Below, in pieces: positions 27,468 through 27,525 of a stretch of 64,000 bases of DNA. The notes beneath the pieces were generated by a model. It was given only the letters and a program-made list of their open reading frames with translations. It was not told the DNA's origin and made no database searches. Source of the DNA: Chara braunii (Eukaryota > Plantae > Charophyceae); contig BFEA01000019.1 in assembly GCA_003427395.1 (NCBI GenBank), positions 2,173,169 through 2,237,168 of the forward strand. The letters run 5' to 3'. Position 1 is the stretch's first letter, and each line of letters begins with the position of its first letter. Made by a program: the position numbers and the translations under genes.

Positions 27468-27525
27468 CAAACTGTTTCGTCGGAGTTTCACCGACTCATC
27501 AGGAGGCTGAACCCTCAACAGTCTG
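27468..27525 (-). ncRNA. Type III hammerhead ribozyme (intact core) in PAA1 intron 1, sense to the gene
   Basis: Minus strand: CAGACUG-UU/GAGG-GUUCAG-CCUC-CUGAUGA-GUCGG-UGAAACU-CCGAC-GAAA-CAGUUUG. All three stems and the CUGANGA/GAAA core are present; NUH triplet is GUU. Confidence 0.85.

Follow-up and report, generated by a model that had tools for sequence, protein, structure and literature searches.

Why does an intact hammerhead ribozyme motif lie, in sense orientation, in the first coding intron of a copper P-type ATPase gene of Chara braunii? We addressed this question within one 64-kb stretch of genomic DNA, here called the window. We think it likely that the motif is a passenger in an approximately 137-nt, 5'-truncated copy of a very abundant, non-coding, transcribed C. 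braunii element family, which was probably mobilised in the manner of Penelope-like (Chlamys) elements and is most likely neutral for its host.

The first-pass annotation had described a complete type III hammerhead at 27468-27525, and sequence reading, the Rfam model RF00008 and folding agree that the core is complete and that all of the named stems pair. Read on the minus strand from 27525 to 27468, the 58-nt motif opens with CAGACUG (27525-27519) and two uridines, U16.1 at 27518 and U17 at 27517. These are followed by stem I, with 4 bp (GAGG/CCUC, 27516-27513 with 27506-27503) and the 6-nt loop GUUCAG, and by the core CUGAUGA (27502-27496). Stem II has 5 bp (GUCGG/CCGAC, 27495-27491 with 27483-27479) and the 7-nt loop UGAAACU, and the motif is completed by GAAA (27478-27475) and CAGUUUG (27474-27468). 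Stem III is an open helix of 8 bp between 27525-27518 and 27475-27468. Since both stem I and stem II end in loops while stem III stays open, the motif is a type III hammerhead. The conserved positions are all present, including the pairs A15.1-U16.1, G10.1-C11.1 and G1.1-C2.1 and an allowed NUH triplet (GUU, 27519-27517), so that by sequence the hammerhead is intact in every conserved core position and in all three stems. Cleavage is predicted at GUU|G, after U17 and between 27517 and 27516, the same position that the first-pass annotation had given.

Rfam Hammerhead_3 (RF00008) matched the motif with 45.8 bits (E 1.2e-8 in a 1-kb search and 7.8e-7 in the 64-kb window on both strands). The gathering score of this model is 48.5 bits, so the hammerhead is missed by a default Rfam run; the match is far beyond chance, though formally under the curated cut-off. 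The pattern CTGATGA..GAAAC found a single intact core in the window. Since this pattern alone is expected 0.38 times by chance, the statistics rest on the covariance-model score instead. Folding of the isolated 58-mer gave the three-stem shape as the minimum free energy (MFE) structure, at -20.2 kcal/mol with a z score of -2.2. The first-pass annotation had also noted a minimal type I hammerhead at 11102-11179, where a sensitive Rfam scan of the whole window (E<=0.5) found no hammerhead family match.

Loop I carries UUCA and loop II carries UGAA, and the two are complementary, as had been pointed out together with the proposal of a 4-bp contact between the loops. The complementarity holds and is kept in a second copy described below. 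The contact itself is only a possibility, and an identical loop II is present in unrelated hammerheads with no UUCA in loop I. These came from a scan of metagenome contigs with the exact stem II and core pattern, which found four contigs with type III hammerheads of 45.9-53.6 bits (L001:1516-1570, L002:8190-8244, L003:1368-1422 and L004:3440-3494). We rejected these as relatives of the element, as they have only stem II and loop II in common with it and their stems I and III differ. In addition, UGAAA is the Rfam consensus for loop II. A Watson-Crick kissing contact is thus not required to account for the complementarity.

The host gene is read from the minus strand. The coding part of exon 1 (28914-29810) is defined by an ORF, a donor GTAAGC (GT at 28913-28912) and stranded RNA-seq. 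Exon 2 (20813-20866) encodes GMSCGGCVAAVKRILESQ, which contains the metal-binding CxxC of an HMA domain; it is preceded by AG (..TCAG) and followed by GTAAGA. Intron 1 thus spans 28913 to 20867, 8,047 nt from GT to AG. When exons 1 and 2 are joined the product reads ..DVIIIDVG|GMSCGGCVAAVKRILESQ, and Pfam HMA (heavy-metal-binding) partial matches show that the domain is split: exon 2 and the following exon (within 15922-16221, ..SASVNLATETAVVRV..) match complementary parts of it. The exon at 4122-4409 has matches to CopA, HMA4 and other copper-exporting P-type ATPases (E ~2e-6). Exons were searched singly rather than as a joined spliced protein model; on that basis Pfam gave no match in the exon 1 ORF or in the ORFs around either hammerhead copy, and a PDB sequence search gave none for the exon at 8674-9207. 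The arrangement ..ILDVGGMxCGGC..SASVNL.. is one which we take to be of the chloroplast PAA1/PAA2 (HMA6/HMA8) type.

The hammerhead lies in sense in intron 1, 1,397 nt past the donor (28914/28913) and 6,650 nt ahead of the acceptor, which bears out its earlier placement within the 8-kb intron 1 of the Cu-ATPase gene. Over exon 1, first mates of the RNA-seq reads fell on the plus strand only, at a depth of 3-5 with 6-12% of each oligo-dT run read. This confirms both the strand and the expression of the minus-strand gene, and the coverage of exon 1 in poly(A)+ RNA indicates that the copper ATPase gene is expressed despite the hammerhead.

Several other features were observed in the window. Introns of the Cu-ATPase gene hold three U6 snRNA copies on the minus strand (6606-6712, 7519-7616 and 21654-21727). 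The strong one is a full copy (96 bits), another scores 52 bits and has an A-rich 3' part, and the third, in intron 1, is partial (35.6 bits); the two weaker copies may be retro-copies. An ORF (24729-25601 on the plus strand, and 25015-25475) contains repeated ..INGTIEHIFLHCP..VLTWRWWD.. motifs in an 81-nt tandem duplication. Its product resembles the zinc-binding C-terminal tail of reverse transcriptases from non-LTR retrotransposons but gave no Pfam match, and this stretch is also highly repeated and transcribed. A short match to eukaryotic LSU rRNA lies at 46776-46840 on the plus strand (37 bits, below gathering).

We then considered the sequence surrounding the ribozyme, using data from the same organism mapped on 25000-29950: a set of DNA contigs, a further contig set that is probably RNA, and the raw reads of two oligo-dT RNA-seq runs. 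The read pile-up was confined to 27299-27534, and together with the loose ends of the reads this delimits a minus-strand retroposon copy as assembled. The copy starts 9 nt 5' of the hammerhead, runs through the hammerhead and continues into a tail of about 70 nt ending ..CTGTTTGTGACG. It is flanked on its 5' side by a (TA)n microsatellite (27535-27549) and on its 3' side by (TA)4 (27291-27298), and the loose-end consensus of other copies also enters (TA)n. When an assembly artefact described below is removed, the copy measures about 137 nt and reads (TA)n, GGGAUUCUG, hammerhead, 70-nt tail, (TA)n. It is a single truncated unit and contains no ORF.

The element belongs to a very large, hugely repeated family. 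Summed DNA contig word depth was 4e5-1.5e6 over 27299-27534 versus about 10 on the unique flanks, or about 10^5 times the unique depth, a ratio which is not a copy number; we place the family at the order of 10^4-10^5 copies. Family RNA was abundant, with 78-80% of the reads in ribozyme sense in two stranded runs (1242 versus 358 and 2744 versus 682). On the unique intron flanks at 26660-27157 and 27822-28153 the oligo-dT RNA-seq gave zero reads. Thus no RNA that covers the ribozyme can be assigned to the intron 1 locus.

Reads from other copies were informative about the ends of the element. Those leaving at 27290/27303 enter (TA)n, which indicates that the 3' end abuts (TA)n in other copies too. 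Those leaving at 27534 go on into upstream sequence that they have in common (agreement 0.79 over 603 RNA reads), which indicates that the family extends further 5' and that the copy in intron 1 is 5'-truncated 9 nt upstream of stem III. We also found read joints from 27515, 27511 and 27492 to 27303 and 27290, often with (TA)n letters between them, which points to other places in the genome where units lie head to tail and their 5' ends vary. One joint 5' end coincides with the predicted cleavage site within 3 ambiguous letters, an agreement that is suggestive only. The joints from 27515 to 27303 could mark junctions at the cut site, either of unit-length tandem copies or of circularly permuted ones, or could be mere alignment ambiguity. 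As a separate observation, the element 3' end on the minus strand (27299-27320, ..CAGTTCTGTTTG) resembles the stem III 5' strand with the cleavage site (27516-27525, CAGACTGTTG). The earlier proposal that the hammerhead derives from a retroelement is supported.

The assembly itself contains an artefact within the element. At 27370-27407 lies a Nextera mate-pair junction adapter (ME-ME) with 1 mismatch, where 0 are expected by chance; the first-pass annotation had noticed an adapter 60 bp from the hammerhead and had asked for a check of raw reads. RNA reads that run into 27408 from the left have (TA)n and the end of the element there, and none contains the adapter. On either side of the adapter stands the same 61-nt segment, an exact direct duplication (27309-27369 is identical to 27408-27468), of which 27309-27369 is the artefactual extra piece of element tail. 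The simplest reading is an assembler loop of segment, adapter and segment. We rejected the duplication as a biological one, either a target duplication or an LTR, as it flanks a sequencing adapter. Four more Nextera junction adapters were observed in the window (96-133, 1029-1066, 1417-1454 and 23483-23520); they join unrelated sequence or abut N runs, and the sequence on their two sides may be non-contiguous in the genome. Mate-pair adapters left in the assembly should be masked by annotators.

The artefact raises the possibility that the assembler stitched the ribozyme segment into the intron by way of a high-copy repeat and a read across a mate-pair junction, and that the segment is absent from this place in the real genome. 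The adapter and exact duplication within the element speak for such a mis-assembly, as do the four other junction adapters with their unrelated or gapped flanks, and among the contigs listed no independent one bridges 27316 to 27660. The tail (<=27369) and the ribozyme part (>=27408) need not belong to a single physical copy. However, the artefact lies outside the ribozyme itself, and from 27408 onward the assembly is free of N across the ribozyme, its (TA)n flank and the 1.4 kb of unique intron that lead to exon 1, so the placement of the ribozyme in the intron is independent of the artefact. In addition, (TA)n is present at both element ends, as a single insertion predicts, and one extra loop accounts for the artefact, its removal leaving a coherent, well-folding 137-nt element. 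We consider a mis-assembly of the ribozyme into this intron unlikely.

Folding was affected by the artefact. In the artefact-free model of the element the hammerhead fold was the MFE structure, with an ensemble probability of 0.63-0.85. When the element was folded with the artefact the ensemble was diffuse, and a helix between stem I and a downstream CCCCUC competed with the hammerhead. Without the artefact the hammerhead fold dominates locally but not in a 302-nt equilibrium context, where its P was 0.003.

A second copy of the hammerhead module was found in sense in the same intron, 4.3 kb further down (23138-23201, minus strand), with 90.8% identity over 65 nt by blastn and 46.0 bits against RF00008. 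In this copy GAAA has become AAAA (G12 to A), which leaves the core dead. GUU, the loop I UUCA and the loop II UGAA are common to both copies, and two stem differences keep pairing, A-U to G.U in stem I and G.U to G-C in stem III. Similarity between the copies is limited in the alignment to about 66 nt around the ribozyme. The tail of the second copy differs, runs for about 40 nt and is followed by (CA)n at about 23104-23056. The ribozyme module is thus common to at least two element families that differ in tail and in microsatellite target, and the dead core suggests neutral decay rather than selection in intron 1.

Does the motif do anything to the RNA in which it lies? To judge by its sequence, intron 1 RNA could cut itself at 27517|27516. 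U17 is a slower hammerhead substrate than C17, and the activity may be low, with a stem I of only 4 bp and GUU rather than GUC. If the ribozyme is active, the 6.65 kb left to transcribe would give minutes for cleavage before the acceptor exists.

One consequence could be that the sense hammerhead cuts the nascent 8-kb intron about 1.4 kb past the donor, before the 3' splice site 6.65 kb downstream has been made, and so tunes or lowers copper ATPase mRNA. A mobile ribozyme would then have turned into a brake on the chloroplast copper pump of a streptophyte alga. The intact core, the sense orientation, the long stretch of intron downstream and the locally favoured hammerhead fold are all consistent with such a regulator. 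Vertebrate retrozymes are depleted from introns, which suggests that insertions of this kind have a cost. Amniote HH9 and HH10 are intronic, self-cleaving hammerheads that are single-copy and conserved at orthologous loci. A documented precedent is the HDV-like ribozyme of CPEB3, which like the motif here (by prediction) is a sense self-cleaving motif in a long intron of a protein gene and which lowers the output of its host (PMC10919898). Very fast intronic ribozymes can abort splicing (PMC2995048, citing Dye et al. 2006 and the Bentley laboratory).

Several observations argue against a regulatory role. Unlike CPEB3 and HH9/HH10, which are single-copy and conserved at orthologous loci, the motif belongs to a repeat family and looks like a recent copy: its sequence is massively repeated, it is one member of a family of the order of 10^4-10^5 copies, and it sits in the usual microsatellite target of that family. 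Its neighbour in intron 1 has a dead core, as neutral decay predicts, and exon 1 of the host gene has coverage in oligo-dT RNA-seq, which indicates that a full-length, polyadenylated mRNA is produced. In the raw oligo-dT RNA reads, molecule ends were not reported to pile up at 27516/27517; this library is blind to nascent intron fragments, and the result is not counted against cleavage itself. Moreover, when a slower hammerhead cuts an intron, tethering of the exons still allows splicing (Dye et al. 2006, cited in PMC2995048). We consider it very improbable that the motif has been exapted as a regulator of this gene, and give just as little credence to the brake on the copper pump. For the passenger copy that we favour, the effect on the host gene would most likely be neutral, or at most mildly costly.

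The first-pass annotation had noted that type III hammerheads of plants occur in retrozymes and viroids, and the motif could be a fragment of a plant-type LTR retrozyme, left as a solo LTR or as half of an LTR pair. The type III topology is the hallmark of plant retrozymes and viroids (Cervera, Urbina and de la Pena 2016, PMC4918200), and the family resembles the plant elements in being type III, non-autonomous, in the green lineage and transcribed mostly in ribozyme sense. Plant LTR retrozymes have two direct LTRs of about 350 bp, each bearing a hammerhead, flanking a 600-1000 nt non-coding core. No LTR-like direct repeat was present at the locus, where the sole nearby direct repeat is the 61-nt assembly artefact, and the second hammerhead, 4.3 kb off, has only about 66 nt in common with the first. 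Compared with the plant LTR retrozymes (PMC4918200), the element here is much shorter, integrates in a microsatellite and is without LTRs, PBS or PPT; its 137 nt end straight in (TA)n on both sides, which leaves no room for a PBS or PPT. The copies end in (TA)n or (CA)n rather than in a 4-bp target duplication, and among other copies the extent of 5' truncation varies and units are joined head to tail by way of (TA)n. We rejected the LTR retrozyme on these grounds, lacking as the element does LTRs, PBS, PPT and a short target duplication, and see hardly any likelihood that this was the source of the motif.

In contrast, microsatellite targets, 5' truncation and head-to-tail joints are the style of Penelope-like retrotransposition, and each was found here: (TA)n at the first copy, (CA)n at the second, and joints in the family reads. 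In C. braunii, Chlamys Penelope-like elements occur at very high copy number, Chlamys-2_cBra has a "canonical 3'-HHR" and a PLE-X-like type also bears hammerheads (Craig et al. 2021, PMC8557442). The same study reports for Chlamys a microsatellite preference with a (CA)n bias and frequent 5' truncation, with head-to-tail insertions among non-autonomous derivatives; Chlamys targets are given as (CA)n and (C)n, and (TA)n is named as the target of animal Naiads (Craig et al. 2021, PMC8557442). The family described here is thus like the Chlamys elements of this same species in its very high copy number, its ribozyme in the 3' part and its microsatellite insertion, and like them also in its frequent 5' truncation, its head-to-tail insertions and the existence of short non-autonomous relatives with common 3' ends. 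The copy here differs from them in being without an ORF. Two other differences count against the Penelope-like reading: the copy lies in (TA)n rather than the published (CA)n/(C)n, and its ribozyme is a full type III whereas published Penelope-like hammerheads are mostly minimal type I.

Animal non-LTR retrozymes are also small, non-coding, transcribed hammerhead elements, tandem or dispersed, for which Penelope-like mobilisation has been proposed (Cervera and de la Pena 2020, PMC7229834; Li et al. 2026 preprint). They carry type I hammerheads and form circular RNAs of 170-400 nt, whereas in the streptophyte alga studied here the ribozyme is type III and the locus holds a single truncated unit.

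Our data are most consistent with a family that carries a type III hammerhead and a short tail after it and inserts into (TA)n, with a sister family inserting into (CA)n. Insertion would most likely be carried out by the reverse transcriptase and endonuclease of Penelope-like (Chlamys) elements, and the copy may be a non-autonomous partner of a Chlamys element or the extreme 3' end of one. What would link it to one particular autonomous element is solely its style of insertion. The copy presumably inserted, in the orientation of the gene, where intron 1 of the chloroplast-type copper P-type ATPase gene has a (TA)n tract 1.4 kb from its start. In the life cycle of the element the ribozyme would serve in the processing of element transcripts.

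As a kind of element the family is a known one: hammerhead-bearing Chlamys elements of C. braunii have already been published, and this locus adds one more copy. If the brake on the copper pump were real, the plant lineage would have an equivalent of the intronic ribozyme of CPEB3. An intact sense copy in a long intron of an expressed, identifiable gene would in any case provide a handy natural test of whether a pre-mRNA is cut in vivo and of how far splicing tolerates it. The locus alone matters little, and the wider interest lies in the element family, which carries a type III hammerhead of viroid and plant style on short elements that appear to integrate in a Penelope-like manner and so stands between the plant LTR retrozymes and the Penelope-derived retrozymes of animals.
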